A DNA stretch of 64,000 nucleotides from Scyliorhinus canicula (GCF_902713615.1 NC_052149.1:231162986-231226985), one strand, 5' to 3'. Counted from the stretch's first letter, positions 21,285 through 55,537 are shown. Translations and numbers: made by a program. Notes: generated by a model from the letters alone, not told the origin.

Positions 21285-22250
21285 CAGGACTCGAGTCCAT
21301 TTGGCCATGTTATCTGCAGACAAATGGAAGTGGGCTAATTCTCCAAAAACTGCTGTGAAGTGTATCCACAAGCATCCAGCAAACGCTGTGGGGTGCTCTG
21401 TTTTCTTTTGCCTACATTTGTTTAGGTCTTCTACCGGGTCTCCTCTGTTGTAGCCAATCGCATCAAGGATCGCTGTGTGCATCTCTTGGAGTGTGCCTCC
21501 TCCTACATTCTGTGGCTAGGGAAGGGCTGCCATGACTGAAGGGTCGAGACTTCAAACTGTGAGCTTTATCTGCTCTCTCTCGTCCAGGCCATACATGGTG
21601 GCCTGCTGTTTTACTTTAGCAAAAAACTAGTGGGGGTCTGATGTGGGAAGGAACGGTGTAATTTTTCCACACGCATCCCGTAATTGGGTCACGGTTAAGG
21701 GGGTTGTATAGTGGAAATCTGTGTCTCCTTCTGCTGCGGCTCTGCGGTATGTGGTTACCGGGTTCATGGGGGTGTGTTCTATCTGTTCAGTTGGGGGTTG
21801 GGGTGCTCTCCTTTTCTGGGGCTTCTCCTGCGTACATGCTCCATGTACATATCTATGGGCTGTTTTGTTCAATTCCTGCCAATCGGGGCCATTCTCCTGA
21901 TCTAGTTGGGGTCCGAATGTGGTCTGAAATCCATTTTGAACTGAAAGTAGGGATTGCAATTATGCAAGTTGCTTCCGGCACTTTGCGTGGTCTACGGAGC
22001 TCTGCCTTTGTTCCGTTGTGGAAGTATGGAGTGCTGGTAGGGCTGCTTTCAAGTCATTGCACTGTTTCTGCAATGTTTCTACCTGCCGCTCGGTTTCCTA
22101 TCTTACCAAGACCACACGTTGATAAGGTAGGCCTTATCGGACTGCGTCTGGAAGCTACTTAAGTGTGGGAGACAAGACTGGTGTGCCCTCTTGGCATCAT
22201 CCACCTCTCTGTCCTTTGCTGCTGGCTTCTCTCTCAAATCCACCAGCACT

Positions 22251-22477
22251 GGGGTGTCTGCTTTGGTATCGTTTGCTTAAGTGTTTCTCTTTTGTCCCCG
22301 GAGATAGCTCATTAGTATGCTAATGGCTTTGCAGTATCGGTCTTGTCTGGGAGCTGCAAACTTCAATCCACAGACAAACCTTGCACCTGCTTGCTTTCTC
22401 AGCATTGTCCAATTTTCCCTTCATTCTCTGCAAGTGTCCATTTTGTAATCGGGATGTGGCCACCCCAAGTGGCTACA
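22251..22477 (-). repeat. Truncated 5' LTR (U3 start only; R/U5, PBS and leader deleted)
   Basis: Shares its first ~73 bp with the 3' LTR and resembles the solo LTR over ~1600-1829, then runs directly into gag-like sequence. Confidence 0.8.
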
Positions 22478-23691
22478 AGATGCTGCCGCCCAACCTGAGG
22501 TAGTGTCATCTGAAGCCAGACCCTCAAGGGCACTGGCTGTTTGAGGATATCCTGGACAAATGGCAACAGTAGTAAACCTTTTAACCTTTTGTACTTGCTC
22601 CATCATTCAATGGCATCTTTCCCACTCTAACTCCATAGTGTTTGATTATGTGAGCCTGTTTACAATTGATGCTCACTGTGCTTGTTTAGTTCAGCCTGGG
22701 TGTGGACTCGGAGAAAAGTAAACCAAACCGTATAAAGAGCCGGAAGCATGGAGACATTTCAAAGCACCGTGAAAAAAAAATCTGTTGTACACATAATAAC
22801 TAGTGTGTTCTGTGCTTAAGTCTGAGATGTAAAATATTCAACGACCACTGGAGTAATGCTGTTTTAGAGGATTCGGACAGACAAACAGGCACTAAGAGAA
22901 TACACAAGAGTGCTTAGTAGAGTTTTGCAAATATCATTGGACGTGTTGCTGGATAAAGTTGCTCGGGAATAATTTCATTCACTGGGATTTTCCAATCCCG
23001 CCCACCATGGGACCGGGGATTGCCGTCTTCCAAACTCCTTTTTCTGGTCTGTCAAATTTTGTTTCCCGACCACGACTATTCCTGCCATGGTCAGACAATC
23101 TGAACCTTTGTGCTGTCCGTTATGTCGGGATCTCGTTCCAGGAGGATGCTTTGATTTTCTAAGGTGCTGAGGGATGGAAAGGTGGGGAATTATGGTACAA
23201 GGATGACACAGGGATATTTTCAGAAGAATAGGAATCTGGTCAGCTCCTCACGGAAGCCACAGTTTCTTGGATGTCCCCTTCCTCCCTCCGCTCCCTCCTC
23301 CTTCAGAGTACAGCTTCCCCTCTCTGCTGCCTCGGCTCCATCTCCCCGTCATGCTGCAGTTCATCAGTGTGTGTAACCAGAGCCACCCTCCCCTCACCCA
23401 CCCTGTCGAAGGAGGCCTTCAAAATTCCTTTGGGAATGTCCAGGAACTTCCTTCTGACTCCAATAGCTCGGGTGAGCTCCCCCACAGAATGTCCACTCAC
23501 TTTAGTCAGAAGATCCTCTCCTCAACATCCCATGATGCCAATGTTTGAAGAATGTTATTGGTTATCCCTGGTGTGGCTGAAGGCAGGTTGAGCTGCGAGT
23601 GTTTGAGAGGGATGAATGTTGGCCCAGGACACGGGGGAACTCCCCTTGCTCTTCACAAGATAGTGGCTGTGGGACCTTCTACCCATTTGAG

Positions 23692-24287
23692 AGGGTAGCA
23701 CGGTAGCATTGTGGATAGCACAAATGTTTCACAGCTCCAGGGTCCCAGGTTCGATTCCAGCTTGAGTCACTGTTTGTGCGGAGTCTGCACATCCTCCCCG
23801 TGTGTGTGTGTGGGTTTCCTCCGGGTACTCCGGTTTCCTCCCACAGTCCAAAGATGTGCAGGTTAGGTGGATTGGCCATGATAAATTGCCCTTAGTATCC
23901 AAAATGGCCCTTAGTGTTGGGTGGGGTTACTGGGTTATGGGGATAGGGTGGAGGTGTTGACCTTGGGTAGGGTGCTCTTTCCAAGAGCCGGTGCAGACTC
24001 GATGGGCCGAATGGCCTCCTTCTGCACTGTAAATTGTGTGTGTGTGTGAGTGCGCTCCTTTTAAAAAATAAATTTAGAGTACCCAATTCAATTTTTCCAA
24101 TTAAGGGGCAATTTAGCGTTGCCAATCCACCTACCCTGCACATCTTTGGGTTGTGGGGGTGAAACCCACGCAAACACGGGGAGAATGTGCAAACTCCACA
24201 CGGACGGTGACCCAGAGCCGGGATTGAACCTGGGACCTCGGCGCCGTGAGGCAGCAGGGCTAACCCACTGCGCCACCGTGCTGCCCT
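23692..24287. mobile_element. Tail-to-tail SINE pair (23692-24035 plus, 24060-24287 minus)
   Basis: Long and short forms in opposite orientation. Confidence 0.88.
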
Positions 24288-24959
24288 GAGTGCCCCCCTT
24301 TTAACGCTTCACCCAAAGAGGCATTGTGATTCAACACAATTAGTATTATTAAAGCTTCACCGTCATGCTTCAATTTGAATGGCTGGTGAAGTAGTTCCAA
24401 CTTCTCCGGAGTGAATAGATCAGTCCTGCCAATTGCTCCCTAATCTGGGAATTATCATGGGGAACTGTGGCTGCGGAAGCTCTGTGAATTATCTTGTTCC
24501 ACCATTGCATCACACAGGATGTCCCTTGGACCCATTCCCATTATTTCATCCAGTGACTACATCAGATTCCAGAGAGAGGGAATTCTGTGGAGCTAACTTC
24601 CTCTGCGCAGGGCCACCGAGATAATTGGGCCAGCCAGCCAAAGAGAAGACATTCGAGGGGTGACCAAACCAGGCGTGGGATCTTCCGGCCGTACCCACGG
24701 ACCCTTGGCTGGTCTGTTACATTTTACGCCCCCGGCCACGACGATTCCCTCCAAGGGCAAGATCAGAAAGCCTCGGCCTTGGCCAGAGGGCTTCAGGAAG
24801 CATCTGAGAGGAGGAGCAGGAAGTGGTGAGCTGGCGAGGTTTACCACAGAGTGGCAGCGTTCAGAGCCTCAGCAGCTGAGAGCGCGGTGAAGTGATTAAA
24901 ATCAGCGATGCGCAAGGCCCCAGGACTGGAGGAGCACAGAGAACCCGGAGATTTGGGGT

Positions 24960-26450
24960 TGGGAGATGGGGAGGGCTGTGTGCGGGGTGGTGGGGGGGGG
25001 GGGGGGGGTGGTGTGTGTGTGGGGGGTTGGTGGAGGGGTGTGTGGGGTGGTGGGGGAGGGGTGTGTGCAGGGGGGTGGGGGGAGGGGTGTGTGGGGTGGT
25101 GCGGGGGCGTTCGAGTTGGTGGGGAGGGGTTTGTGGGGTGGTGGGGGAGGGGTGTGTGGGGTGGTGGAGAACGGGTGTCTGCGGGGTCTGGGGGAGGGGT
25201 GTGTAGGGTGGTGGGGGGTGGGGGCGAGTTGGTGGGGGAGGGGTGTGTGGGACGGGTGTGTGCGGGGTAGTGGGGGGCGGGTGTGTGCGGGTTGGTGGGG
25301 GAGGGGTGTGTGCAGGGGGGTGGGGGTAGGGGTGTGTGGGGTGGTGGGGGGGGGGTGCGAGTTGGTGGGGGACGGGTGTGTGCCGAGTAGTGGGGGAGGG
25401 GTGTGCGGGGGATGGGCGAAGGGTGTTCAGGGTGTGGGGAGGGGTGGGTGCGGGGGGGGAGGGGTGTGTGCGGCATTGCGGGGGGGGAGGCGAGGTGGTG
25501 CGCAGTGTGGGGCAGGGGTGTGTGCGGGGGGAGGCAAGGTGGTGCGCGGTGTGGGGGAGGTTGTGTGCGGGGGGGGAGGTGAGGTGGTGCGTGGTGTGGG
25601 GGAGGGGTGTGTGCGGGGGGAGGCGAGGTGGTGCGCGGTGTGGGGGAGGGGTGTGTGCGGGGGGAGGCAAGGTGGTGCGCGGTGTGGGGGAGGGGTGTGT
25701 GCGGGGGGAGGCGAGGTGGTGCGCGGTGTGGGGGAGGGGTGTGTGCGGGGGAGGCGAGGTGGTGCGCGGTGTGGGGGAGGGGTGTGTGCGGGGGGAGGCG
25801 AGGTGGTGCGCGGTGTGGGGGAGGGGTGTGTGCGGGGGTGTGTGTGCGGGGGGAGGCGAGGTGATGCGCGGTGTGGGGGGGGGGGTGCGGGGGATGGGTG
25901 AAGGGTGTTCAGGGTGTGGGGAGGGGTGGGTGCGGGGGGGGAGGGGTGTGTGTGGGGGGAGGCGAGGTGGTGCGCGGTGTGGGGGAGGGGTGTGTGCGGG
26001 GGGAGGCGAGGTGATGCGCGGTGTGGGGGGGGGTGCGGGGGATGGGTGAAGGGTGTTCAGGGTGTGGGGAGGGGTGGGTGCGGGGGGGGAGGGGTGTGTG
26101 CGGGGGGAGGCGAGGTGGTGCGCGGTGTGGGGGAGGGGTGTGTGCGGGGGTGCGGGGGAGGTGAGGTGGTGCGCGATGTGGGGGAGGGGTGTGTGCGGCG
26201 GGGAGGCGAGGTGGTGCGCGGTGTGGGGGAGGGGTGTGTGCGGGGGGTGCAGGGGGGAGGTGAGGTGGTGCGCGATGTGGGAGAGGGGTGTGTGCGGGGG
26301 TGCAGGAGGGAGGTGAGGTGGTGCGCGGTGTGGGAGAGGGGTGTGTGCGGGGGGAGGCGAGGTGGTGCGCGGTGTGGGGGAGGGGTGTGTGCGGGGGGTG
26401 CAGGGGGGAGGTGAGGTGGTGCGCGGTGTGGGGAGGGGTGGGTGGCAGTG
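24960..26450 (+). repeat. G-rich minisatellite (~40-45-bp unit ggggggaggcgaggtggtgcgcggtgtgggggaggggtgtgtgc)
   Basis: Many diverged tandem copies with extreme G/C strand skew. Confidence 0.92.
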
Positions 26451-27919
26451 ATATTGAATGGGGACTTGTGCAAGTCAGGACGTGGGTAACTGAAGTCGAC
26501 GGAGTTTGGGATGTGGGAGTCTGGGAATGGGAGCATTGGAATTGTGGAATCTGAAGGCATCAATGACGATGGAGGAGGATTGCAACAGAAGATGGGTCAA
26601 TTAGTCCAAAAAGGTGGATCACAAGCAGCTCCTCGAGAACAATGAAACATGGGCAACAAGTTCCCAACTTGCCAGTGACACTCATCCCAGCAATAAATGA
26701 AACATAGGGGCAAGAGGGGCAAAGACACACAAGTACCCTCGTCTACGTGGGTCTTGGCTCCACAACCCAAAGATGTGCAGGGTAGATGGATTGGCCATGC
26801 TAAATTGCCCCTTAATTGGAAAAAAAGGACACAGTCATGTAATTTTCCTCTGACCTTTATTCCTTTGTTACTCCTTTATAACAAATCCAAATCCTTTCTC
26901 TTTTACAAATGACATTAATCAGAAGCCATTTTCTCATCTCAGAAGCTCTCTGAACACCCACCACCCCCTGAGCAAGGAATCACCACTGTACCACAGTTAG
27001 CACATTCCACCAAGTCCGCAATTCACTGCCCAGAGCCCCTCCTCCCTCCCTCGAGCGACATTAATGGTCATTCCTATAACAGCCTGCCCTCTCAGCTAAT
27101 GTCGCTTCTTCTTAAACTTATCCACCAACATCGACACAACTACACGCAGGAAAAACTTTATTTAAGCAAATCTTAATTATAATGTGCAAATCTTAAAACA
27201 ACACAAGTTTTTAAATGCAAAGGCCATAGAAACTCCAGCAGGTGATAGGTCACCCCTCTGACAGAAACCAAACTAAAATGAATGAATAGTCCTTGAAAGA
27301 AATGTCCCACTTTTGGGAAAGGTACTGGTTGTAAAGCCGGCACTGCCAAAAATATTAATAGATTAGCCGCATCGTTTGCAATGTCGGCGGCAGATCCGTC
27401 AAAAATTACCTCATGCTCATAACGCGGACGCACTTCAGAAACCTTTTCCACAGCAATGCGCTCCTATTCAAACTCAAAGTTACCCAGCAAAAATAGGCAA
27501 CAATTTCTAGCGCTTAAAGCCGCAATGCACATCACACACTGACAGAAGAGTTGGCGAAACTGTTTGCCAAACTGCTCATTTCACCGGGGACTTCCTGTCA
27601 TTGAGGCCAAGATGCTCATGGGAGCCATGTCTGACCTGCAAAATTGTGGCAGATTGGCACTGGGTCAATCAGTAGAAAGTGCAGCCAATTGTCCAGCTCA
27701 TGGCTCAACCTCTCATCATTTTGATTGAAAAACTAGCAAGGTAGCATCGTCATATGGAGCCCGTCGCCGTATCAGATTATTTGACAGATGAACACTGCTG
27801 CCGGTTGCAAACACCTGTGAGAAACTGACTGGTTTGGATTTGGCTTGTGTGTCTCTGTGAGAGGATCAAAGGGAATGAACAGAGAAGACTTTTCATCCTT
27901 GATTGGGCCAAAGTGGGTT

Positions 27920-28140
27920 TTTTTAATTTAGAGCGTCCAATTATTTTCTTCCAATTAAGGGGCAATTTAGGGTGTCCAATCCACCTACCCTGCACATCTA
28001 TGGGTTGTGGGGGTGAAACCCACGCAGACATGGGGAGAATGTGCAAACTCCACACGGACAGTGACCCAGGGCCGGGATTCGAACCCGGGTCCTCAGCCTT
28101 ACAGTCCCAGTGCTAACCACTGCGCCATGTGCCATGCTGG
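27920..28140 (-). mobile_element. tRNA-derived SINE (short form)
   Basis: Similar to other copies in the window. Confidence 0.85.
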
Positions 28141-28241
28141 GTTAAAGTTGATGGTGAAGGATATTAACCACAGGGAATTTGCTGATCCACGGCTTTGATA
28201 AAGTTGTATGAAAATAAAACAACAAGAATAAATTCCCTCCC

Positions 28242-29548
28242 TTTATTGCAAAATTATTTTCCCCATCTACAGTTAGCAATCGCTGTTAAGTAACAAATAA
28301 AAAGAACAGGAAGCAATATCATTTTCTCGCAAGTTGATTATAGGCAATACTAGCTTCAAACAAAGTAATCAATAGCCAGGCACACAGTTAGAAGGTGATG
28401 CTTCGGTAAGGTGTGGTAATGTATATCGTAGGAATATAAACTGGTACTACCACGATAACCCGTTCAAACCTTGAACCCCAAAATATGGGGATGGGGCAAA
28501 GTCACTTTGCATCGAAAAACAATTCGCCGAGGAACAATTTCTGGCCCAAATCATCTACTTCTGAATCCGAATGCGGCCAATGCTAGCCAGGTCAACAAAT
28601 ATTGAGCATCCCTGGTCAACAAATATTGAGCATCCCTGGTTGACCTTTTGAGATGGTGATGCGAGCTTTCTTCTGAACCCATTTCAGTCTGTGGAGTGAT
28701 TGTCCTTCAATGCTGCAGTTGGCGGGGTACAGTGCAGAGGGGTTGGGTGGGGGGATGGAGGAGGTGGAAAGAGGGGGGTGGACTTCGAGGGTCATGACCC
28801 CAGTATAAAAGTGCCAACAGAGGTTTTAGATTCAAATCAAGATGGGCCGTGTGGCTAATGGACAGGTCAGTATATAAAGGAGAAGGGCAGGTTTAGATAA
28901 TAGTTGGGAGCCATCATTGGATTAGGCCCTAAAGAAGGATCCCCCCTCCATCTCAAACCTTTGCCCCTTTTGATGTCGTGAATTGCCAGAATTCTCTCAC
29001 TAATCGTGTTCTGGCATCCAGTTATTTATGTTCCTCTGTACCAGTGTATATTCCTTTGGCATTTCTACGATTAAACCACTCCCGTCTGACATTTTACTCT
29101 TCAGCTCTCCTCATGTCTCAATGTTGGCAAGTTTGAAACGGCAAATCGTTTTGGGTTTTTTTAAGTAGGGCCTGAGATTTAGGGGATGTTGTTCTCCCGG
29201 TTCCCTGTGGGCCACCCAAGAACAAACCTCGGAGGGGGAATACTGTGTTTTGTCACTTCCTCCTGGGAATTGGATCACAGCATCCCCGTGGAATTTCCTT
29301 ATTGGGGATGGGGGGGGGGGGGGGAGCGCCAAATTAGGAATGGCAAAGATCTGGGCAAGTTGAGACAAGTCTTCAAGAAGAGTGGGAAGTACAATAGCCA
29401 GGCAAGGAGGCAGCTGTCAACGGTTAGCGATCATACCCAAGGTTAATAAAAATCAGTAGTTGCAATTAATGAATGATTGAATTGTGGAGGGTATCCAGCC
29501 AGGATGTGCCCGTCTCTCCATCAAGAGTCCATCTTCACCCTTAGTGTG
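28242..29548 (-). other. Candidate CD74 terminal exon / 3' UTR
   Basis: Strong acceptor ctctttctctttgattacag| at 29549, then 'ca cac taa' (stop after two codons in phase 1), then mostly non-repeat sequence. AATAAA on the minus strand at 28242-28247 and 27157-27162. Other acceptors (e.g. 32537) are possible. Confidence 0.35.
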
Positions 29549-30114
29549 CTGTAATCAAAGAGAAAGAGTTCACATGAGTTTAAAAATTATTCCAAAATTT
29601 TGAAGTTTCAACAATGTTTTCAACATTGTTTTCCTCTGGGTTCCATATGCAGACAATTTGTATTGTTTTTAAAAATTCTTTCATGGAACACAGGATTGCT
29701 GGCTCGGCCACGACTATTTAATGGCCATCCCTAATTGCCTTTGAGAAGGTGGTGATGAGCCACCTTCATGAACCGTTGCATCCCCCCCCCTGCTGTAGGT
29801 ACACCCACGGCGCTGGTAGAGTGAGAGTTCCAGGATTTTTGACCCAGTGACAGTGAAGGAACGGCCGATATATTTCCCAGTCAGGATGGTTAGTGGTTTG
29901 AAGGGGAACTTTCAGGTGGTGGTGTTCCTATGTGCCCTTCTAGATGGCAGAGCGCATGGAAGGTGCTGTTGAAGGAGCCTTGGTGAGTTCCTGTGGTGCA
30001 TCTTGTAGATGGTACACACGGCTGTTACTGTGCGTCGGTGTTGGAGGGAGTGAATGTTTGTGGAAGGTGTGCCAATCAGATGGCTGCTTTGTTCTGGTTG
30101 AGCTTCTTAGATAC

Positions 30115-30815
30115 ATAGAACATACATACAGTGCAGAAGGAGGCCATTCGGCCCATTGGGTCTGCACCAACCCACTTAAGTCCTCGCTTCCACCCTATCT
30201 CCATAACCCAATAACCCCTCTAACCTTTTTTGGTCACTAAGGCCAATTTAACGTGGCCAATCCACCCAACCTGTACATCTTTGGACTGTGGGTGGAAACC
30301 GGAGCACCCGGAGGAAACCAATGCAGATATGGGGAGAACGTGCAGACTCCACACAGACAGTGACCCAGCAGGGAATCGAACCTGGGACCCTGGCACTGTG
30401 AAGCAAAAATGCTAACCACTGTGCCACCGTGCCGCCCTTGAGTGATGTTGGTGCTGTATTCATCCAGGTAAGTATTCCATTACACTCCTGACTTCATGGA
30501 ATCCATACCGTGCAGAAGGAGGTCATTCAGCCCATCAAATCTGCACCGAACCTCCGAAAGAGCACCCCATCTGGGCCCAATCCCCAGTCCTATCCCACCC
30601 AACCTCTGGACACTGAGGGGAAATTTAGCACGGCCAATCCGCCTAACCCGCACATCTTTGGACTGTGGGAGGAAACCGGAGCACCCGGAGGAAACCCACG
30701 CGCACACGGGGAGAACATGCAGACTCCGCACAGACAGTGACCCAAGGCCGGAATTGAACTCGAGTCACTTGGCGCTGTGAGGCAGCAGTGCTAACCACTT
30801 TGCCACCATGCCGCC
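30115..30815 (-). mobile_element. Two tandem long-form SINEs (30115-30437, 30495-30815)
   Basis: Similar to other copies in the window. Confidence 0.87.
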
Positions 30816-31002
30816 TGTGTCTTGTAGATGATGGACAGGCTGTGGGGAGTCTGGAGGTGAGTTACTCACTGCGGCATTCCTCAATGTTGCATTTTATTTT
30901 GTGTCTTTCATGACCTCAGACCTTCCCAGAACACTTTACATCCAATGCAGTGCTTTTGAAGTGCGAATGTACGGAATGTGGCTACCAATATGCACACTGA
31001 CT

Positions 31003-31202
31003 AGTAAGAAGTCTTGCAACACCAGGTTAAACTCCAATGGGTTTGTTTCAAATCGCTAGCTTTCGGAGCAGAGCTCCTTCATCAGGAAGGAGCTGTGCTC
31101 CGAAAGCTAGTGATTCGAAACAAACCTGTAGGACTTTAACATGGTGTTGTAAGACTTCTTACCGTGCCCACCCTAGTCCAACGCTGGCATCTCCACAGCA
31201 TG
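31003..31202. mobile_element. Second Penelope-type palindromic insert with the centre deleted
   Basis: Same arms as 50471-50707; near-perfect TSD gcacactgactag / gcacactaactag. The minus strand keeps CUGAUGA-GGAGC/GCUCC-GAAAGCUA. Confidence 0.75.
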
Positions 31203-31864
31203 GCACACTAACTAGGGTTGCAAACTCTCCAGGATTTGCCCAAAGCCTCCAGGAACTGAAGATCAATCTCCACGACACACTGCTGTGTCCGATCCTAGAG
31301 AAAATTATTCAGGGCATTAAAAAAGATTGGGGATTTTTTTTTCTCATGTTCATTGAATATTTTGGGAATGTCAGATTGGAGATTGTGCTGAAATCTCACC
31401 CACAACTCGCTGACTCAGAGACGAGAGTTACTCACTGAGCCACAAATGACAGAAACCTCCCTCTGTGGTATTCAATTTGGACCCTGTTTGTAATTTCCAT
31501 CGAACACAAAGCAGAAAGCCACAGTGAGCGTAAAACAACATTCCCTTGAATAGTGAGCAGAAGCGTCCCTTTCTGTATCTGCCAAAACCTCCACCCTTCA
31601 GGGTTAAATTGCAAAGGCGGGTTGCAGAAACTGGCTTGAGAGCTTTAAAATGAAGGTGTTGTCCCATTGTTCCCGTACCAACCTCCCCGGACAGGTGCCG
31701 GAATGTGGCGACTAGGGGCTCTTCACAGTAACTTCATTGAAGCCTACTCGTGACAATAAGCGATATTCATTCATTCATATTTATTCATTGTTCAACTGGG
31801 AACTAACGTGGATCAGCGAGCGTGACAGCAACTGGTGAATGGGACTTGGTGCGAATTAGGGTAT

Positions 31865-32190
31865 AAGAACATAATAAGAACATGAGAACTAGGAGCAGGA
31901 GTAGGCCATCTGGCCCCTCGAGCCTGCTCCGCCATTCAATTAGATCATGGCTGATCTTTTGTGGACTCAGCTCCACTTTCCGGCCCGAACACCATAACCC
32001 TTAATCCCTTTATTCTTCAAAAAACTATCTATCTTTATCTTAAAAACATGTAATGAAGGAGCCTCAACTGCTTCACTGGGCAAGGAATTCCATAGATTCA
32101 GAACCCTTTGGGTGAAGAAGTTCCTCCTAAACTCAGTCCGAAATCTACTTCCCCTTATTTTGAGGCTATGCCCCCTAGTTCTGCTGTCAC
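31865..32190 (-). mobile_element. CR1 3' fragment
   Basis: RTRGHSLKIRGSRFRTEFRRNFFTQRVLNLWNSLP; (cataaga)n tail. Confidence 0.85.
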
Positions 32191-33439
32191 CCGCCAGTGG
32201 AAACAACCAGGTGGCAAGGCTTTGGAGGGGAGGAGGTGGGTGGTTGGTCAGCAGGAGGAGCATAAATACCGCATGGCCCCATTGGGCTGAATGGCCTATT
32301 TCTGTCCTTTGGGGATCAGGGAACATTTGTATCAAATTTTCCCTCAGTGACATATACGTGTGAGTGGAATCCATTGCAGGGGAGAGTTTATATTGCCTGT
32401 GGAAGGATAATAAATGGATAAGTAGAGTTTATTATAGCTTATAGCTTGGACACAGGGTTTTGAGGACTTTCCTCATTTCTGGCCTCATTACATTCTTCAG
32501 GTCACACATGGACCATGCACAACAGTCCTTCCTAACCTGCAGGGGCAAAGCGTTGTCGTGCCAAACGATTTTTACAGTAACTTCATTGCAGTGTTAATCT
32601 AAGCTTACTTGTGACACTAATAAAGATTATCGTTATTATTATTGTACAATTCATAGAATGTCACACAAGTGGGTAGTGGCCCTCCCCTTGAATCTTTGCG
32701 GGTACGTCTGCTTTGCAGGATTACAGAACGCTGCGCAGTGTTAATGTCATTCCGAGACACGCAGAGTTGAAAATACAACTCTAGTCAAGAGTCCAAACCA
32801 TTCTAAAAGCCATCCAGCCATCCTCGAAATGTGCTGCGTTGGTTGTTAAGGCTGCAGCAGTATTTGGGGAGTTGTCCGCTATGGTTGATCTTCGGACCCA
32901 ATAGTTTTCACTCCTGATCCCTGGTGGGTGAATCCTTCTGGGCGGTTCCAAAGGATGGGCCCCAGTGATGGCCTGCCATTTTGACCTGGCTGAATTAGTC
33001 TTTCCCTGAGGGCTATTCTCATTGAGGGGCTTCAAACGATTGGTGTGGTAACGCCGGACAAATCCTTTATTCTGATAGTGGGCTGGGATGGAGGGGCGGG
33101 GGGTCTTGGGGTGGAGGGGGTGGCATCGGAAACTAGGGAACCAAATCTTAAAATTAGTGCAATTAGGAGCAAACTGAGAGAGAAATTCTACACACAAAGG
33201 GTAAGGGAAATCTGGAAGTCTCTCTGCACTGAAAAGGTTGTGGATTCTGGGGATCAATTGGATCATTCACGTCTATGACAGATTTCCTTGAAAGTAAGGC
33301 CATAAAGAAAGATGGAGCAAAAGCAGCAAAAAGGTGCTAAGGTACAGATCAATCGTTGTCGTATCAAATTGTGGGACAGGCTTGAGGGGCAGAATAGTTA
33401 AATTCCATTCCTACATTTCAGTTTATCCGTTCACGGGAT

Positions 33440-34190
33440 AAGAGCTTTGCTGGCCAGGCCAATGTTTATTGCCCATCCCTAATTGCTCTTGAGTTGGTGG
33501 TGGTGAGCCGCCTCCTTGAACCGCTGCAGTCCCTGTGGTGTAGGTACACCCACTGTGCTGTTAGGGAGGGGATCCCTGGATTTTTGACCCAGTGACAGTG
33601 AAGGAACGGCGATGTATTTCCAAGTCAGGATGGTGAGTGACTTGGAGGGGAACATCCAAGTGCGGGCGCTCCCAAGTATCTGCTGACCCTGTCCTTCTAG
33701 CTGGTAGAGGTTTAGAAGGAGGCTGTTGAAGGAGTCTTGATGAATTGTTACAGTGCATCTTGTAGATGGTACACGCGGCTGCTGCTGTGTGTTGGTCGTG
33801 TCGGGAGTGAATACTTATTGTGGTGGATGGGGTGTCCTGGATGGTATCGAGCCTCTTGACTGTTGTTGGAGATTCACTTATCCAGGCAAGTGGGAAGTAT
33901 TTCATCACACTCCTGACTTGTGCCTTATAGATGGTGAACAGGCTTTGGGGAATTCACTTCAGAAATCCCAGCCTCTGAACTACTCCTGTAGCCACAGTAT
34001 TTATATAGCTAGTTCAGCTCAGTTTGAGGTTGTTAGCGATCCCTAGGATGTTGATGGTGGGGGACTCCACAATGGTAATACCAGTGAATGCCAAGAGGCG
34101 GTGGCTATTGCCTGGCACTTGCGTGGCGTGATTGCTACTTCCTACTTAGTTGGCCAAATATGAATGTTGTCCAGGTCTTGCTGCATGTGG
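33440..34190 (-). mobile_element. Fragment of another LINE family (related pieces at ~9430-9730, 29690-30100, 39905-40470, 59560-59830)
   Basis: Degenerate RT C-terminus M.YFPLAW....PTTVKRLDTIQD...TIYKMHC; shared 3' sequence caattagggatgggcaa. Confidence 0.65.
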
Positions 34191-34266
34191 GCTCTGAAAG
34201 GGGGTGGGGGGGTACTTTTTAAATCACATTTGTACTCCCAGGTAGATCAAGAAAACGAAAACATAC

Positions 34267-34464
34267 GTTTGCAGTTTAATTGGTGCCGACTGTCTGTTCC
34301 TTCGATCTTGGTTCCATTCAGATAAACGCACCAGCAGAATCCTGTGCTGGGCCAACATTGCTTCACCTCATAGTTTCCCATCTCATCACAGTTGGGGAGG
34401 AAGGCTCCAGGAATAATCCTGGCTTTCGTGCGACGTCTCTCACAGTCAGTGTCGGCTTTGAGCA
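34267..34464 (-). CDS. CD74: CD74 thyroglobulin type-1 domain exon (p41-type; VLKADTDCERRRTKARIIPGAFLPNCDEMGNYEVKQCWPSTGFCWCVYLNGTKIEGTDSRHQLNCK)
   Basis: Acceptor ccctttcctcatccag|tg, donor c|gtatgt, 198 nt, phase 1-1. Six Cys with QC and CWCV motifs. Confidence 0.96.
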
Positions 34465-35730: not shown

Positions 35731-37587
35731 CTCTGAAATTTCCTCCATAAACCTGTTTGCCTTTCCACCTCACTGTGATCTTTAAAGCCACCTTTTGACC
35801 AAACTCACCCTGTTAACTCTTTTATGTGGATCGGTACCAATCATTCCTGTGAAGCATGTTGGGATGTTTTATTGTGTTAAAGGTGCTACATCAATGCACG
35901 TTGTTGTTTCTCCCCCCCCAATCATTAACCTTGATGCCTCTGGCTCTCCATTCAAGGCACATGTAATTGGGAGATGTTCCTGGAATTGGGATTTTCAATC
36001 GGCTGACTGCATGATCACCCGTCAGAGAAGGGACCAGGACATTCTGAGGGACTGGGAAAGAGGGGTTGGTATCCCAACCTCCACAGCGAAAATGAAAGCA
36101 GCATTGAGCAAGTAAGTCCCCAACGGCATAACAAAGAACTGAAGAATTCTTTCTTGAGAAGATGTGTGGGTGAAAACCTGTGCCTTAAACACTCCAAGGT
36201 GCAGCATTCCAGAGCATTCCTGATCTTGTGCTCGAGTTCTTTTGGATTGTGGCCTTGCATGGATTAAGCAGATCAGTCTTCAATTCATCAATATTGGGCA
36301 CTCCACGAGGGCAGTCTCGTCGCTCTGGGATAAACCAGAACCTAAAAATTGGTTTAAATCCTCCCTTCACTCACAGCAGCTGAGAAATGAACTTGCAGCA
36401 ATTCTTCACGGCCCGTGAGTCATTAACAGAATTCCAGTGTTGAATAACAAAAGTGCAATATGAATCAGTATTTTAGAATTTCTCTTGATGGATAACGGAA
36501 TATTGATATCAAACATTTTTTTTCAGAAGAGTAAATGACTGGATAGGGTCCAATAGGCAGGCTGTACATACTGTGTGGGCAGAGATTTAGTGACTGGGTA
36601 GAGTCTATCTTGGGGGAGATTGTACATGGTTTGTGGGCAAAGATTCAGTGATTGGGTAGAGTCTATCTTTAGAGTCAGTGTACATGATCTGTAGAATGGA
36701 ATTCAATGAGGTGGTAGAATCTATTAGATGGGCCGAGTCTATGGTGGGGGAGAGTGTACATGGGCTGTGGGAAGAGATCGAATGGTTAATGTTATTTTCT
36801 CCGTCACTGTTTATATGTTTGCACTATTGTATGATAAATCCAACACAGTGGTTATAGTACTGGATTCTTATAATCCGGAGTTTTGGACAGCTAATCTTTG
36901 CGTTTCCTCCTTGTGTTTTCAGAATCAAGGATTTCACCAGTTTGTCCTTCAATGCCAGTTCCTGCCTGAATAACCTTCAGTGGCAAAATGTTCCAGCCAT
37001 TCCCTGGATGGAGATATTTCTCCGAATGAGACCTTGCAGCAGAAGTAGGCCATTTGGCCCATCGCGTCTGCTTCACCATTCAATGAGATCGTGACTGATC
37101 TGATGTGATAATCCTCAACTCCACTTTCCCGCCTTATCTACATAACCCTCGATTCCCTCACTGATTAAAAATCTGTCTCTCTCAGCCCTGGACATACGTA
37201 ACGACCCGGCCTCCACAGCTCTCTGCGGTAAAGAATTCCACAGATTCACTAACCCCTGAGAGAAGAAATTCCTCCTCATCTCGGTCTTAAATGGGCGAGT
37301 CCCTCACTCTGAGATTAAGCCCTCTGCTCCTAGACTCTCCCACAAGTGGAAACAACCTTCCCCTTAATCAATTGCCTAATCAAGCCTAATCAAAGACACA
37401 TCAAAAATTTACAAACCTCAATTAAAACTGCTCCTGGACCTCTCTTCAACAGTGAAAATAGTCCCAATATCTCAAGTCGCTCCTCAAAACTTGACTTATC
37501 CCCTGCATCTCTCTGGTGAATCCAGCCTGTACATGTGCCATGTGCCCCACCTACATCATACAACACTCATGGAGTTTCTTGATAATC

Positions 37588-38985
37588 TTTTTTTTTTAAA
37601 TTTAGAGTACCCAATTCATTTTTTCCAATTAAGGGGCAATTTAGCGAGGCCAATCCATCTACCCTGCACATCTTTGGGTTGTGGGGGCAAAACCCACGCA
37701 AACAAGGGGAGAATGTGCAAACTCCACACGGACAGTGACCCAGGGCCGGGAAGGAACCTGAGACCCTGGCGCCGTGAGGCAGCAGTGCTAACCACTGCGT
37801 CGCCATGCTGCCCTTCTTGCCAATCATGCCGATCAATGATTCAGAGCCTTTTGTGTCACACACGGTGTGACAGAGTTTACAACAGGCCCAGGCATGAGGC
37901 CCCTGTGGTGGCGAGCTTGGGGAACCATAGATCCAGAATTACCTGCTTCTCCGAGCACGTTACACTCACCACACGCCCGGCCACATTTTCTGGCCCTGAC
38001 ACTGACTGGAAAATCTGCGGAGCAGTTAAAAGTCAGCAGCTCTCCAAATGTTCCACCCCTGCCCGTGACCATGACCACCAGCGTCGAGGTCAGAAGACCC
38101 CCTATCCTGCATGTCTCAAAGCTACTCAGAATCTGTATTCCAAATTGTTGTTTTGTGAATGAAGTCTATCCGGCTTGCAATTGAATGAATCAAGGCCTGA
38201 CGAGAAATTATGCACCTCCTGACTGAGGTAAAGAATAAGGACCGAGGTGGCAATCTGATTGCAATTGCCACTCCTGAGCCTATCTTTTTAGCTCATTCAG
38301 GCCTGTTCATTTGCACGGAGTTAAAACAGGGTCCAAATTGTTTTGCAGGGAGTAATATTGAATTTTATCCCTTTGAACTGGTTCTGCTGTTCTGGACAAT
38401 GTGACTGTGTGTAAGTGAACAGCTTTATGACACCGTTCCTAATCCAGTTTGAATCTTTGCTCTGTGTGGGCTAGTCGCACTGTTACACTGACACCCAAAC
38501 TCGATCCTTTCCAATCCCGTATTTGCTGTGGATTAAACATTCGTTGCCATAGTTACCCTTTGCTGCAGGCACAACTTTGGGAGATTTGGCCTTAGCATCA
38601 GCTGCGACTGGCATGTCGACCATCATTGGCCTCATGGCTATGCTTGAATAAATCTTCCTCCCTGTGGCAAACACAAATGATGTAGCAGTTTCAACAGAAC
38701 GTCACAATGATACATTTGGCACCAGTTGTAGAGAGCAAGTTGGCGTTGATGTGATTTTCTTTTTTTTTATAAATTTAGAGTACCCAATTATTTTTTCCAA
38801 TTAAGGGGCAATTTAGCGTGGCCAATCCACCTACTCTGCGCATTTTTGGGTTGTGGGGGCGAAACCCACGCAGACACGGGGTGAATGTGCAAACTCCACA
38901 CGGACAGTGACCCAGAGCCGGGATCGAACCTGGGACCTCGGCGCCGTGAGGCGGTTGTGCTAACCACTAGGCCACCGTGCTGCCC
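37588..38985 (-). mobile_element. Short-form SINEs at 37588-37814 and 38760-38985, on either side of the linker exon
   Basis: Similar to other copies in the window. Confidence 0.8.
38557..38661 (-). CDS. CD74: CD74 extra linker exon (GRKIYSSIAMRPMMVDMPVAADAKAKSPKVVPAAK) with a CLIP-like repeat
   Basis: Acceptor ttgtgtttgccacag|gg, donor g|gtaact, 105 nt, symmetric phase 1-1. Keeps frame between exon 6 and the thyroglobulin exon. Confidence 0.8.
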
Positions 38986-39114
38986 AATTTTGAAATTCTT
39001 ACCCTTCTTTTTAAATCCATCCATGGTCTCACTGAACCTTCAGCCAGACAACCCTCCGAGTTATCCACCCTCTTTAAATTCTGGCCTCGCGCACATCCCT
39101 GACTTTTAGTCAAT

Positions 39115-40507: not shown

Positions 40508-40622
40508 CGCTGGGTTGGGGTTTGGGTTCCGGCGCGGGTTGGGGGGGACTAGTTGTTGGGGCTGTCTTCTTCTCCTGGATGAGTTGAAAGAGGAGCCAGT
40601 TTTGGAGCCAAGTTTCAAAGTT
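40508..40622 (-). CDS. CD74: CD74 exon 6 (NFETWLQNWLLFQLIQEKKTAPTTSPPQPAPEPKPQPS)
   Basis: Acceptor tcttttgtttccag|aac, donor g|gtacgt, 115 nt, phase 0 to 1. Contains the FE.W...WLLF signature of the trimerisation domain. Confidence 0.95.
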
Positions 40623-42111: not shown

Positions 42112-43712
42112 GGCAGCATGGTGGCACCGTAGTCAACGCTGCTGCCTCACAGCGCCAAGGACCCGGGTTCAATTCCGGCCTCGGGTGACTGTGTGGAGTT
42201 TGCACGGTCTATCGTGTCTGCATGGTTTCCTCCGGGTGCGCCGGTCTCCTCCCACAGTCCAAAGATGGGCGGGTTAGGTGAGTTGGCCATAATCAGTTGT
42301 CCCTTGGTGTCCAAGGTTATGGGGTGGCAGGAATAGGGCGAGGTTAGTGTGCTCTTTCAGAGCATCAGTGCAGAATCAAGGGGCCGAATGGCCTCCTTCT
42401 GCATTGTAGGGATTCTATGGTTTAAAATGTATAGGGCGATTTAATAGAGTTCTCAAAATAATGAACGGATTTAGGAGAGTAAATGGGAAGGGACTGTTTC
42501 CATTTGAAACGAGGTGGGTCACCAGAGGTCACAGATTGAAGTTCATTGACGAAGGAATCAGGTGGGAAATGAGGAGGTTTATTTCGCACAACGGATTGTG
42601 CGCTGCCAGAAAGGACGGCAGGAGCAGATTCGGTGATGAACTTTCAAAGGGAATTGGAGAAATATTAGAAAAGGGAGAATTTGCAGGGCGCTGGGGAAAG
42701 AGCTGGTGGGAGTGGGACTACTTGGGCGGCTCTTCCAAGGAGTTGGGATGGGCACGGGCGGCCTCCTCCTCTTCTGTATCGTTCCATGACTCTACAATAG
42801 CTGTCAAAGCTTCCCTGCAACCCTACCTTCAGCTGTTCCTGCACTTGTTCCAGCAAGGTCATGGGCTTGGCGGGAGTGGTTTTCGGAGCCTGTGGAAAAA
42901 CAATCACAAGAATGAAACGTGTACATTTCTAAGATCAATTTTATTGGTCGTAACCACCATGAACTGTTTTAAAATCAAATTTGTCACAATATATTGGTCC
43001 AATTCTGCCTGCAGTATCGCATTCGATTCTGGGACACCCCATCTCAGGGGAGGATTTACCAGCTCCCAGTGGGTAACTTTCTTGCCTCTGCGTTTGCAGG
43101 TTGTGGGTTCAAATCCCATCCCAGAAACTCAAATGTAAAAATCTAGGTCGACGCGCGCTGTGCCAGTACCGAGGAGGAACCGCACTGCCAGGTGAGATGC
43201 TGAACCCACGATAGTTGTCCTCTGAGCGGGTGATATATGATCCCACAGTCTCTGCTGATGAGCAGGGTTGTTCTCTGTTTAAGCTTTTTCTGGGAATGTG
43301 GAAGGTTCTGTGCAAATGCAAATCTTTTCCTCTCTTCATCTATGTGCAGGTGGCCGTGGGCTTAAGCCCTCAAGCATCAAGTCATAGAATCATACAATTT
43401 ACAGTGCTGAAGAAGGCTATTCGGCCCATCGAGTCTGCACCGGCCATTGGAAAGAGCACCGTCCACGTCTCTATCCTATCTCTGTAACCCAGTAACCCCA
43501 TCTAACCTTTTGGATACAAAGGGGCAATTTATCATGGCCAATCCACCTAACCTGCACATCTTTGGACTGTGGGAGGAAACCGGAGCACCCGGAGGAAACG
43601 CACGCAGACACGGGGAGAACGTGCAAACTCCACACAGGCAGTCACCCAGCGGGGAATTGAACCGGGGACCCTGGGGAAGTGAGGCAGCAGTGCTAACCAC
43701 TGTGCCACCGTG
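42112..43712. mobile_element. Long-form SINEs at 42112-42420 (plus) and 43384-43712 (minus), flanking CD74 exon 4
   Basis: Similar to other copies in the window; opposite orientations. Confidence 0.82.
42827..42889 (-). CDS. CD74: CD74 exon 4 (APKTTPAKPMTLLEQVQEQLK), start of trimerisation domain
   Basis: Acceptor ttgtttttccacag|gct, donor aag|gtaggg, 63 nt, phase 0-0. Confidence 0.9.
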
Positions 43713-44467: not shown

Positions 44468-45356
44468 GTCTGGCGGTCTGATGTCACCAGGCCCTGGTTC
44501 ACTGTCCGTGTGGAATTTGCCCATTCTTCCCCCTGTTTGCGTGGGTTTCGCCCCCACAACCCAAAGATGTGCAGGGTAGGTGGATTGGCCGCGCTAAATT
44601 GCCTCTCAATTGGAAAACATGAATTGGGTACACTGAATTTATTTTAAAAAACGTTTGTGCAGAGCGTGGGGCGGTCTACCCAATTCCCCGCTGTGAAATC
44701 CAGCTCTCTGGCCAATTGCAGCAAATAATGGGACCATTTCAAAAACCCCACCCGACAAAGCTCTCCCCCAATCTCGGAGAGTTTGGATGCCGATCCTGCT
44801 GGGATCCAGGCGGTACTGCGCCAACCTTGCAGAGTCCCACCTGAGGGTCAAGGAATCGAAAAACCCGACTGCCAGCCTCACCAGAGGCAGCGCTCGATTT
44901 GATCCATTTGCTTGTGTGCGCGTTGGGCGGGCAGGGGTGCTCACGCTGAACATCGGCCGACTTGGCATGCAGAGGGGGAAGGGGCTGGGCTGGGAATCGG
45001 GTTGTGGGAGGGGGGGTGCAGGGAATAGAACATAGAACAGTACAGCACGGAACAGGCCCTTCGGCCCTCGATGTTGTGCCGAGCAATGATCACCGTACTT
45101 AAATCCACGAAACCCGTATACCCGTAACCCAACAATCCCCCCATTAACCTTACACTACGGGCAATTTAGCATGGCCAATCCACCTAACCCGCACATCTTT
45201 GGACTGTGGGAGGAAACTGGAGCACCCGGAGGAAACCCACGCACACACGGGGAGGACGTTCAGACTCCACACAGACAGTGACCCAGCCGGGAATCGAACC
45301 TGGGACCCTGGAGCTGTGAAGCATTGATGCTAACCACCATGCTACCGTGAGGCCCC
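44468..45356. mobile_element. SINEs at 44468-44650 (plus) and 45024-45356 (minus)
   Basis: Similar to other copies in the window. Confidence 0.8.
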
Positions 45357-45881
45357 TACTGTTGACTGAAGTTGGAAAAAGGAGACAAAAAGCCTCATGG
45401 GCCATAGGCTGTACGCAGAGCGTGAAGACGGTGGGGGAACAGGGGGCGGGGGTCGAGGAGACCAAGGGAGGTCAATGGAGGAGGTCCTCCAAAAACAACA
45501 TTGAGTTACCTTAAAATGATGACCTTTCCCTCTGCTGGCTCCATCATTGAGCCCCAACCTATCACTGACCTGGTACTCCACCAAGCTCCCCGCTAGGACT
45601 TGGGGCAGGTTCCCATTGGGAGGATGCTTCTCTTTTTGTAACACGTTATCCCATTCTCTGACCACCTCTGCGCCCAATGAGTCTGTTTTGAAGATCAGTC
45701 ACTGTACTCATGTTGACCAAATGCAGCAGCCACTGTTGTGTACAGTACGATCCCGGAAACAGTAAAGTTCGATGACTAACCACCTAATGTGTCCCTTGGC
45801 AGTGCTGACTGAGCTTTAGTTTTTATTCATCCATTCGTGTTAAGTGTAAGTTCTTGCTTTTCTTTCTTTGCTGAAAGTTAC

Positions 45882-45961
45882 CTTTGGATGTTCCATTTTT
45901 GGGTCAATGTACGCAATGGGCAAGTCCATCATCATGGGTCGGATCATCATTTGTTTAGGTC
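45882..45961 (-). CDS. CD74: CD74 exon 3: CLIP region (RPKQMMIRPMMMDLPIAYIDPKMEHPK)
   Basis: Acceptor ttttatttcttcag|ga, donor aag|gtaact, 80 nt, phase 1 to 0. Met-rich CLIP-like peptide at the expected position. Confidence 0.92.
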
Positions 45962-47413: not shown

Positions 47414-47592
47414 TGACAGGATTCCGGCTTGAAGAGTACTTGTTTTCAATTCGATCCGTTGTCTTCTGCAGATGGGTTATCTTGTCCTGTTGCTTCAGCA
47501 GGAACATGACGCTGACCACTTGCCCGGCAATTAGCATGGCTGCGAGCACAGTCACGCCACCCCAAAGGAGGCTTCGAGAGCATTTATTGCTG
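47414..47592 (-). CDS. CD74: CD74 exon 2: type II transmembrane segment (SNKCSRSLLWGGVTVLAAMLIAGQVVSVMFLLKQQDKITHLQKTTDRIENKYSSSRNPV)
   Basis: Acceptor tatttcag|c, donor a|gtatgt, 179 nt, phase 2 to 1. Matches the invariant-chain pattern KCSR...LL.AGQ...FL.QQ. Confidence 0.95.
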
Positions 47593-47855: not shown

Positions 47856-48072
47856 TTTTAAAATAAATTTAGAGTACCCAATTCATTTTTTCCAATTAAG
47901 GAGCAATTTAGCAAGGCCAATCCACCTAGCCAGCACATCTTTGGGTTGTGGGGGGTGAGTCCCACGCAAACACGGGGAGAATGTGCAAACTCCACATGGA
48001 CAGTGACCCAGAGCCGGGATGGAGCCTGGGACCTCGGCGCCGTGAGGCAATGTGCTAACCACTTGCTGCCCC
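47856..48072 (-). mobile_element. tRNA-derived SINE (short form)
   Basis: Similar to other copies in the window. Confidence 0.85.
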
Positions 48073-48499
48073 CAGGTGGGGTTTTTAATGACAATCTGGC
48101 AGGTAGCTTCAATCCGAATCAGATTAACATCTTACTCCAAAAATACTTAGTCAACTGAATTCTATTTGCCCCAGCTGCAGTGGCGAGATTTGAATTGATG
48201 TCGCCGCAGGCCGCTGGATTATAAATCCAGTACTATAACAACCATCGCGCTAGACTGCCTTAAACTTAACCAGAAGATGAAATAGTTTTCATGTTACAGA
48301 CTCACATTCAAACTTGACAGATTGGACCATGGAGTTGAGCTCTCTCCCTCAGCATGAATGATAGGTGGTCAAGTCCACTGACAGCCCAAGATATCTTTCA
48401 ACCTCTCCCCTAATTAGCCCATCGCGGTTCAATCAATGACTACAGCTGTCCCAAATGTGTAAGAACTTGAACCTTGATCATTATTAAACTAATCCTGTT

Positions 48500-54123: not shown

Positions 54124-54859
54124 CCGACTAAATTAATATCTCAAAGGCTGCCTTGCCAATAGAAGGGCGGCCATTTTGTTTGACAGCCTGTTAAGGGATT
54201 GTGCTCACGTTAATCCTTTTTTGTGCTTTTGATGGCTGCATTCTTGTTAATAGCTGATTCCCTGATTGCATTTTAACCTTACCTGAGGGAGAGGAGAAAT
54301 GATTTTCTGAGAAGAGGTGAGGTGTCCATCGCACCGAACCCTGCGTTCGATACCAACCAAAACTAATACAAGGTAGATCCAATGTACTCGGTAACCACCC
54401 ACCCAACTGATCCACTCTAGAGGGCGACAAGACAATGTGCCAGGCATCCCCCAATCCCCCACCCCCAATCAAATCCAAAGCCCATCGGGTCTGCACCAGT
54501 CCTTGGAAAGAGCACTCTACCTAAGCCCACACCTCCACCTTATCCCCATAACCCAGTAACCCCACCGGCCATTACACTGCAACGTAAATCCCTTCCATGG
54601 CAGTGGCAAGTAAATGTGCAAAGATTCAACCAGAAATTAATTGTTTGCAAACCCTTCATAGAAACATTTGTTAAAACATGTGAACTTGTCTCCGTGGGGT
54701 GAATGCAGAAGATCTGGTTTGTAACCGGATTCAGGTTCAAACTGAGGTGGGGGCTCAACTATAGCCACGATTGAAAGCGTTTCATGTCCAAAGTGCTACC
54801 CTGGGGTCAGGAGAAAGAATCAAATTCAGCGAAAGATCCTGGTCCTGGCCATTGCCCAC

Positions 54860-55537
54860 AGTGTGTGGGCTTTGTGTGTGTGGGTGCATGCGTGTCTATA
54901 TGTGCCCGCATGTGCTTTGTGTGTGGCTGTTTTGTATTTATATGTGTGTGCATATGTGTGTATTCATCGGTGTGTGTGTGTACACGCATACCTGTATGGA
55001 CATAGAAATATGCCCATGTGTGTGCATATACCTATTTATGTGTATACATGTCTGTGTGAGTGTTCTTGTCCCGGTGTGGGGAGAGTGTGCGCGTGGCTGT
55101 GTCCATGTGTGTGGGTCTGTGAGTGTGCGTGTGTCCATGTGCGTGGGTCTGTGAGTGTGCGTGTGTCCATGTGCGTGTATATATTAGGTGAGTGCAGCAC
55201 TGAATTCATTTGTGATGCCCTGCCTTTTGTGTTGACACTCACTGTCCTGGTCCAAAGGGAAAAATGCCCGTCTCGGAGTCAAGAGGGAGGGTGTATGCGT
55301 GAGGAAATGAAGGCAAGCCTCAGTATTCTCAGACCAATGATATCAGCCTGGCTAAACTGACTGGGACATAATTAGACAGCTCCCTTGCGACCTCTGGTGG
55401 AGGAAGTGTGTGTGTGTCAGTGTCTGTGTGTGTGTGCAAGGCTGCATATGTCTGTGTTTGTCTGTGTGCATGACTGCGTGTGTCAGAGTATGTGTGTGCG
55501 TGTGTATGTAACTGTGTGTGTCAATGTATGTGTGTGC
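54860..55537. repeat. Degenerate (TG)n-rich simple repeat
   Basis: Visible TG periodicity; ends at the gap. Confidence 0.9.

Follow-up and report, generated by a model that had tools for sequence, protein, structure and literature searches.

An expressed linker exon of elasmobranch CD74 encodes a conserved CLIP-like motif

The CD74 gene of Scyliorhinus canicula

The sequence analysed here, to which we refer as the window, is a stretch of 64,000 nucleotides from the genome of the catshark Scyliorhinus canicula (NC_052149.1:231162986-231226985), and all positions are counted from its first letter. It contains the gene for CD74, the class II invariant chain (Ii) of the major histocompatibility complex (MHC), which is encoded on the minus strand. 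The subject of this report is one exon of that gene, the linker exon at 38557-38661, which we call exon X. The original prediction, made from the sequence alone, held that this exon is real and that it encodes a second peptide resembling CLIP, the invariant chain peptide associated with class II. Both statements were borne out. Exon X is almost certainly a real, expressed and conserved exon, and its similarity to CLIP is very probably specific and not due to chance, as far as this can be judged from sequence comparison.

A nine-exon model on the minus strand yields a translation of 313 amino acids that is identical, with zero differences, to RefSeq protein P0158, annotated by NCBI as 'H-2 class II histocompatibility antigen gamma chain-like isoform X2' of Scyliorhinus canicula. 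Because of this exact match, the window is identified as the catshark CD74 gene and the previously predicted junctions are the annotated ones; the gene is assigned to CD74 without reservation. The two junctions that connect exon X to its neighbours (40508/38661 and 38557/34464) are both needed to reproduce P0158 exactly, and exon X is thus part of the annotated protein. The coding features are as follows.

56702-56802, minus strand: exon 1, coding portion, with the start codon at 56802; cytoplasmic tail; matches P0158
47414-47592, minus strand: exon 2, transmembrane segment and stalk; Pfam MHC2-interact, E=7.7e-15; acceptor used in P0158 at 47589
45882-45961, minus strand: CLIP exon (exon 3) of 80 nt; phase 1 to 0, donor GTAACT; encodes PKQMMIRPMMMDLPIAYIDPKMEHPK
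42827-42889, minus strand: exon 4, phase 0-0; matches P0158
41393-41488, minus strand: exon 5, first part of the trimerisation domain; Pfam MHCassoc_trimer, E=1.8e-5
40508-40622, minus strand: exon 6, end of the trimerisation domain and Pro-rich tail; MHCassoc_trimer, E=6.5e-5; its donor at 40508 joins exon X
38557-38661, minus strand: exon X (the linker exon), 105 nt, phase 1-1; acceptor ...GCCACAG, donor GTAACT; matches P0158
38606-38659, minus strand: CLIP-like conserved N-terminal half of exon X, RKIYSSIAMRPMMVDMP; identity 0.55; aligned to the CLIP core by hhalign
34267-34464, minus strand: thyroglobulin type-1 (Tg) exon, 198 nt, phase 1-1; Pfam Thyroglobulin_1, E=2.3e-17
29541-29548, minus strand: start of the terminal coding exon, which completes a P and then adds H and the stop; completes the match to P0158

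The domain assignments are supported by profile matches of individual exons. The translation of exon 2 matches MHC2-interact (PF09307) with 55.1 bits at a cut-off of 26.9. Exons 5 and 6 cover positions 13-44 and 45-65, respectively, of the MHCassoc_trimer profile (PF08831), and the whole proteins carry this domain as a precomputed assignment. The Tg exon matches PF00086. The start of the terminal exon is the sole AG|CNCAYstop candidate within 20000-34266.

Exon X is placed between trimerisation exon 6 and the Tg exon, its acceptor reading ...TTTGCCACAG, and in the phase-1 entry frame it encodes G/RKIYSSIAMRPMMVDMPVAADAKAKSPKVVPAAK/V. The CLIP exon is found about 7.3 kb further upstream in the gene.

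Expression and splicing of exon X

Expression was assessed from the word content of contig sets and from mRNA contigs. A total of 35 words was sampled over 38400-38780, which comprises exon X and, at either end of it, about 150 nt of intronic sequence. All 7 words sampled from exon X are present in 19 runs from nine studies. In runs X1-X11 (five studies), which are contig sets of 43-219 Mb, the fraction of words found is 0.20, corresponding to the 7 exon words and to 0 of the 28 intron words. The occurrence of exon words without flanking intron words in such small contig sets is the pattern expected of spliced RNA. Four runs of one further study contain 0.63-0.77 of the words from this region.

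A separate observation concerns run X27, which is labelled as organism B. It contains 8 of the 35 words, close to the 7 that were sampled from the exon. This points to a close relative with a near-identical exon X.

Exon X is found in products with and without the Tg domain. The Tg exon is a symmetric phase 1-1 exon that is optionally used, and Tg-less products occur in nurse shark, sawfish and skate. In nurse shark, exon X is retained both in the form with Tg (P0209) and in the form without it (P0188, 243 amino acids). Sawfish isoform X2 (P0191) and the skate mRNA contigs (P0192) equally carry exon X without Tg. For skate, 16 near-identical proteins were obtained from Logan contigs of about 1.1 kb, which have a complete reading frame of 257 amino acids and untranslated ends, and in these the exon X homologue is joined straight to the terminal exon. 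As exon X is present irrespective of Tg, it looks constitutive, while the Tg exon is the alternative one.

The only sampled elasmobranch product without exon X is a gene model from Chiloscyllium punctatum (P0163, 296 amino acids), which proceeds directly from exon 6 to Tg. This model may either represent a true form in which exon X has been skipped, or an 84-nt exon may have been missed by the annotation. It was also noticed that Chiloscyllium isoform X1 (P0164) has an exon X homologue, unlike P0163, which keeps Tg.

Exon X had been predicted to be skipped independently of the Tg exon, giving up to four isoforms. The underlying arithmetic is right: both exons have phase 1-1, and omission of one or both preserves the reading frame. 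Its retention in Tg-plus and Tg-minus products nevertheless makes exon X look unlike a freely skipped cassette. Two of the four forms are well documented and a third is represented by the single model P0163, but a form that lacks both exon X and Tg was not seen among the products compared.

Resemblance of exon X to CLIP

Over the 14 residues of the CLIP core, exon X agrees with CLIP at 7 (R, P, M, M, D, P, A) and has conservative substitutions at the others; the same identities had been predicted for a core of 12 residues. The exon X motif AMRPMMVDMPVA aligns to the CLIP core IRPMMMDLPIA beyond what is expected by chance (p=0.0005). This value was obtained by Smith-Waterman comparison of the exon X peptide with everything N-terminal to exon X in the S. 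canicula protein, the null distribution being generated by 2000 composition-preserving shuffles of the peptide. The top match is CLIP, with a score of 59. When each of 17 species was treated in this way, the top match of exon X was the CLIP region, in a single register, for 12 species, and in 9 species p was <=0.02. The value of p=0.0005 from this within-species shuffle test is shared by S. canicula, S. torazame, Heterodontus and Hemitrygon.

Profile comparisons led to the same result. Two alignments of 17 elasmobranch sequences each were prepared, one for CLIP (A2) and one for exon X (A3). They are aligned by hhalign over 14 columns with a probability of 83.5% (P=8.4e-6), and the consensus pair reads mMHlRPMmMdmPia for CLIP and SmaM-PMm--lp-- for exon X. 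When the exon X profile is compared to the whole N-terminal alignment, CLIP is the sole match with a score of 25.2, the runner-up having 6.7. Exon X alignments with shuffled columns (n=400) score 10.9 on average (standard deviation 2.3, maximum 20.4), and none of the 400 reach the observed score.

The motif is also restricted in its distribution. In 12 of 16 chondrichthyan proteins, the pattern P[MLI][MLI]..[LMQI]P has exactly two sites, one in CLIP and one in exon X, and it is found at no other place in them. When all six frames of the window are scanned with a hidden Markov model of the core, only the CLIP exon and exon X are detected (E=4.7e-6 and 0.003). Further copies of the motif or pseudo-exons were sought in the window by the same scan and none were found, the next match having E=0.34. 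In position the two motifs differ: exon X follows trimerisation exon 6 and its Pro-rich tail, and does not lie between stalk and trimerisation domain as CLIP does.

Conservation across sharks and rays

CD74 relatives were collected by two protein searches, one of which used a query alignment (A1, consisting of P0114 and the Tg exon) sized to the length of CD74. The search with the Tg exon returned no CD74 among the best 150 matches, all of which are proteins with multiple Tg domains ranked by their summed score. A stop-free stretch of 133 amino acids around the Tg exon (region 62-128) gave no candidates, CD74 (296-332 amino acids) being outside the length window of that query. The sharks sampled are Scyliorhinus torazame, Carcharodon, Mustelus, Chiloscyllium, Rhincodon, Ginglymostoma, Heterodontus, Heptranchias and one UniRef entry, and the rays are Hemitrygon, Mobula, Pristis, Amblyraja, Rhinoraja, Narcine and the skate from Logan contigs.

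The searches also brought up a set of proteins encoded outside the window (P0114, P0127, P0135) with 240-275 amino acids, at least one of them from a Logan contig. Each combines a short tail at the N terminus with a single hydrophobic segment and two thyroglobulin type-1 domains, and the identity of P0114 to the Tg exon of catshark CD74 is 57%. These proteins have a type II, CD74-like layout with no recognisable CLIP or trimerisation domain.

With the exception of P0163, all sampled elasmobranch sequences have an exon X homologue, which follows the Pro-rich end of the trimerisation exon and precedes Tg. No exon X segment was found in the CD74 proteins retrieved from two tetrapods, a bird and a gecko. 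The mean pairwise identity is 0.68 for the CLIP exon, 0.56-0.69 for the trimerisation exons and 0.44 for the Pro-rich tail of exon 6. For the first 18 residues of exon X it is 0.55 (0.48 between sharks and rays), and for the remainder 0.21. By this measure, the first 18 residues of exon X appear to be conserved to a degree comparable to that of the trimerisation exons.

Near-invariant positions of exon X are R2, S6, S7 and P12 together with flanking Met residues. The original prediction had made the conservation of RPMM.D.P in other cartilaginous fish a touchstone. What is kept in sharks and rays is a related pattern, [FY]-S-S-x-[AV]-M-x-P-M-[ML]-x-x-[LM]-P, while the D and A of the core are not generally conserved and occur in catsharks and a few other lineages only. 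The consensus of the CLIP core, to which this pattern is specifically similar, is [RK]-P-M-M-M-D-[LM]-P.

A further observation was made within the CLIP exon itself (45900-45950). In many of the sampled elasmobranchs (P0159-P0190) it contains a tandem mini-repeat in which [KR]-P-[IM]-M is followed, after two residues, by [RK]-P-M-M, corresponding to a spacing of 6. Chains that have this mini-repeat as well as exon X carry three [KRSQ]P[MIL][MIL] sites.

Origin of exon X: duplication or convergence

It had been proposed that exon X is a duplicate of the CLIP exon. With regard to entry phase, basic start, core, exon end and a collinear extension the two exons agree with this proposal, while with regard to exit phase and silent sites they do not. 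On balance we regard an origin of exon X as a copy of the CLIP exon as probable, if with moderate confidence, and the copying would then most likely have occurred before the split of sharks and rays.

As had been stated originally, both exons have a phase-1 entry and share the donor GTAACT; none of the other six donors of the gene has this sequence. Both have a basic start (x-[PR]-K), a core at a similar distance from this start and a basic residue at their end. The part of exon X that follows the core mostly finds its best match, in collinear order, in the remainder of the CLIP exon, and this weak extension is significant in Hemitrygon (p=0.006) and in S. torazame (p=0.012). The exons end as CAAAG|GTAACT (exon 3) and CAAAGG|GTAACT (exon X). 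A single additional base at the 3' end might therefore have turned a 1-0 exon into a 1-1 exon that fits between two phase-1 introns.

A number of observations weigh against this origin. An exon duplication should have equal phases at both ends, but exon 3 is left in phase 0 and exon X in phase 1. The cores share 24 of 42 bases and 4 of 14 third-codon positions, a random level for the latter, and the silent-site likeness of duplicated exons is thus absent. It follows that the likeness is maintained at the protein level and is not that of a recent copy. Such a value is expected if the duplication predates the split of sharks and rays, so that an old duplication is still compatible with it. Together, however, the random third-codon positions and the differing exit phases make common descent inseparable from convergence. 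At the profile level, similarity past the 14-residue core does not reach significance (p about 0.37).

CLIP and exon X sequences from the same species do not co-vary (p=0.27, and p=0.37 when shuffling is performed within sharks and within rays). As same-species pairs are no closer than cross-species pairs, the data point neither to gene conversion nor to lineage-specific co-evolution. Nothing in CLIP corresponds to the SS pair, whose residues are the most conserved ones of exon X. The C-terminal part of the motif is eroded in several lineages, the D and the second P having been lost in skates, in the electric ray Narcine and in P0169. The nurse shark proteins P0188 and P0209 have MKSMM, with Ser in place of the central Pro, where the whale shark relative has MKPMM. 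The tandem [KR]P[IM]M mini-repeat of the CLIP exon implies that motifs of this type may arise easily. When short exons alone were compared to Pfam (E<=10), exon X (34 amino acids) was not matched; as the true CLIP exon (26 amino acids) was not matched either, this test has no power for short exons.

Much of this would be accommodated if the motif were real and its likeness to CLIP convergent or compositional, in which case exon X would be a linear motif, rich in Met and Pro, of a flexible tether with another purpose. Such a convergence would explain why the SS pair is not part of CLIP and why D and the second P vary, why co-variation with CLIP, significant profile similarity outside the core and a DNA-level trace of common origin were not detected, and why the motif is C-terminal to the trimerisation domain, unlike CLIP; [KR]P[IM]M is in any case present twice within the CLIP exon already. 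It is less easily reconciled with a score that was never reached by column shuffles (0/400), with p=0.0005 from composition-preserving shuffles in S. canicula, with one fixed match register in sharks and rays alike, and with the C-terminal half of exon X, the best matches of which are mostly collinear with the remaining CLIP exon. We consider convergence the main alternative and a possibility to be taken seriously, albeit one that is less likely than not. Candidates for the other purpose are a protease processing site in the stepwise degradation of Ii, a docking site for a partner outside the groove, or a structured spacer for Tg. As exon X also occurs in products without Tg, it is not merely a Tg spacer.

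Possible function as a second groove ligand

A function of exon X as a second CLIP-type linear ligand of the class II peptide groove is our preferred mechanistic reading. It is a tentative proposal, which we consider possible yet doubtful, based on the similarities described above. The candidate groove-binding segment would be SSIAMRPMMVDMPVA.

The structural setting was modelled with AlphaFold2 on the basis of a 17-sequence alignment. The CLIP residues 93-129 and the region 185-246, which includes exon X, are both predicted to be disordered (predicted local distance difference test (pLDDT) <50). The pLDDT of the trimerisation helices is about 50-73, and high confidence is reached in the Tg domain alone. 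In the model of the full protein, neither exon X nor CLIP is packed onto Tg or onto the trimerisation helices. The predicted disorder suggests that exon X may be a linear motif on a flexible tether, in the same way as CLIP.

Class II peptide grooves are located at the membrane-distal end. In the human Ii-class II complex, as seen by cryo-electron microscopy, the flexible trimerisation domain is also found at the membrane-distal end of the complex (PMC11087810). A Pro-rich stretch of about 20 residues would tether the exon X motif to this domain and thus near the class II grooves, and a motif about 20 residues past the trimerisation domain could plausibly reach one of them. Two binding registers are conceivable. 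In the first, Pro would be placed at P6, as in human CLIP. In the second, the conserved aromatic residue would occupy P1, with Met at P4, P6 and P9.

Several routes could lead exon X into a groove. It might occupy a groove in cis after CLIP has left, it might act in trans on further class II dimers, or it might be released as a peptide early in the breakdown of Ii. Cartilaginous fish are devoid of DM (PMC8010645), and in such DM-less animals exon X could serve as a spare placeholder or as a competitor of CLIP. That each elasmobranch Ii chain would have two working groove ligands, with exon X flexibly tethered at the trimer's membrane-distal apex, is the most far-reaching form of this proposal, and we rate it as rather improbable. 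If true, DM-less vertebrates would gain a built-in means to hold and exchange a placeholder peptide. The combination of a genuine exon, an origin as a CLIP copy and a role as second groove ligand is our best overall explanation, which we hold with roughly even confidence.

It had also been suggested that exon X might be a CLIP suited to another class II lineage. Sharks have two very old class II lineages (PMC8010645), which could be paired with the two CLIP-like motifs of each Ii chain, the exon X peptide being specialised for one of them (DAA/DAB or DBA/DBB) and canonical CLIP for the other. The split between DAA/DAB and DBA/DBB has been dated to the ancestor of sharks, after their divergence from rays (PMC8010645). 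Exon X and its motif are present in rays, sawfish, skates and electric ray, so that the timing fits poorly; in addition, DAA/DAB has been found in three shark orders only, while exon X was found in every sampled elasmobranch. This suggestion was not upheld, and we consider such a specialisation very unlikely.

A chance match in a fast-evolving linker without a function of its own, to which the low identity in the C-terminal half of exon X (0.21) and the erosion of the motif in several lineages might point, is strongly disfavoured and to be regarded as highly improbable in view of the shuffle tests, the hhalign result (P=8.4e-6), the confinement of the motif to exactly the CLIP and exon X sites, and an N-terminal half that is conserved like the trimerisation exons across the shark-ray divergence.

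Comparison with known systems

Exon X resembles CLIP (PF09307) in being a short disordered Met/Pro-rich motif with the core [RK]-P-M-[ML]-x-x-[LM]-P, which is encoded by a small phase-1-entry exon and is part of the same protein. It differs from CLIP in its position C-terminal to the trimerisation domain and in its [FY]-S-S prefix. In elasmobranchs, CLIP is followed by an invariant Y-I-[DN]-P, which exon X does not have, and groove binding by exon X is putative. Because of the different position and the putative nature of its binding, we do not classify exon X as 'a CLIP' but rather as a CLIP-like internal repeat.

An extended linker that precedes the thyroglobulin-like domain in the Ii of cartilaginous fish was reportedly described, and as a linker only, by Criscitiello et al. 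in 2012 (Dev Comp Immunol 36:521). Exon X is this extended linker, and the nurse shark proteins P0188 and P0209 are the sequences that were deposited with that description. The nurse shark linker carries ERKIFSSVAMKSMMVSLPEPAKAPVSKK at the place of exon X, in the Tg-plus form as well as in the Tg-minus form. In the searchable part of the literature, which did not include the 2012 description of the linker, no mention of a second CLIP-like peptide was found, and the CLIP-like feature of exon X has apparently not been described before.

The Tg exon of elasmobranchs is also alternative, and with a symmetric 1-1 exon after the trimerisation exon the arrangement is like that of the p41/p33 splicing of Tg in tetrapod CD74. 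What differs from p41/p33 is that exon X, lying upstream of Tg, is an exon of its own and on present evidence is retained in both forms. Teleosts have two invariant-chain genes, CD74a and CD74b (PMC6523485), and elasmobranchs resemble them as a fish lineage with more than one CLIP-type segment for class II. In teleosts this is due to gene duplication and involves two proteins, while in elasmobranchs there are two motifs on one chain.

Other features of the CD74 gene

At 47589-47592, exon 2 has a NAGNAG tandem acceptor (…TTTCAG|CAG|CAAT…). P0158 uses the downstream site (GQSNKC), and use of the upstream acceptor inserts one Ser (GQSSNKC), as seen in S. torazame. This tandem acceptor probably accounts for the X1/X2 isoform pair.

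The introns of CD74 contain many copies of a short interspersed repeat on both strands, with open reading frames of the type …GSIPGWVTVCVEFA…SPRVCVGF… (examples are found at 37567-37863, 38788-39024, 43476-43708, 45184-45465 and 47858-48112). Intron 1 has a long TG/CA-rich simple-repeat tract at 54780-55680, with open reading frames rich in C-V-C-V and H-T-H-T, which enters a gap of 143 N at 55538-55680.

Significance

Among the living lineages that have MHC class II, the cartilaginous fish are the oldest. In tetrapods, CLIP is removed by the editor DM, and how peptides are loaded in the DM-less cartilaginous fish has been raised as a question (PMC8010645). A conserved second CLIP-like motif in the Ii of every sampled elasmobranch is a concrete and testable candidate for a part of the answer. 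Even if exon X does not bind to the groove, the 'extended linker' would not be a passive spacer, as it contains an island of 18 residues that is constrained like the trimerisation exons. In addition, CD74 with its exon X probably offers an instance of intragenic exon duplication.

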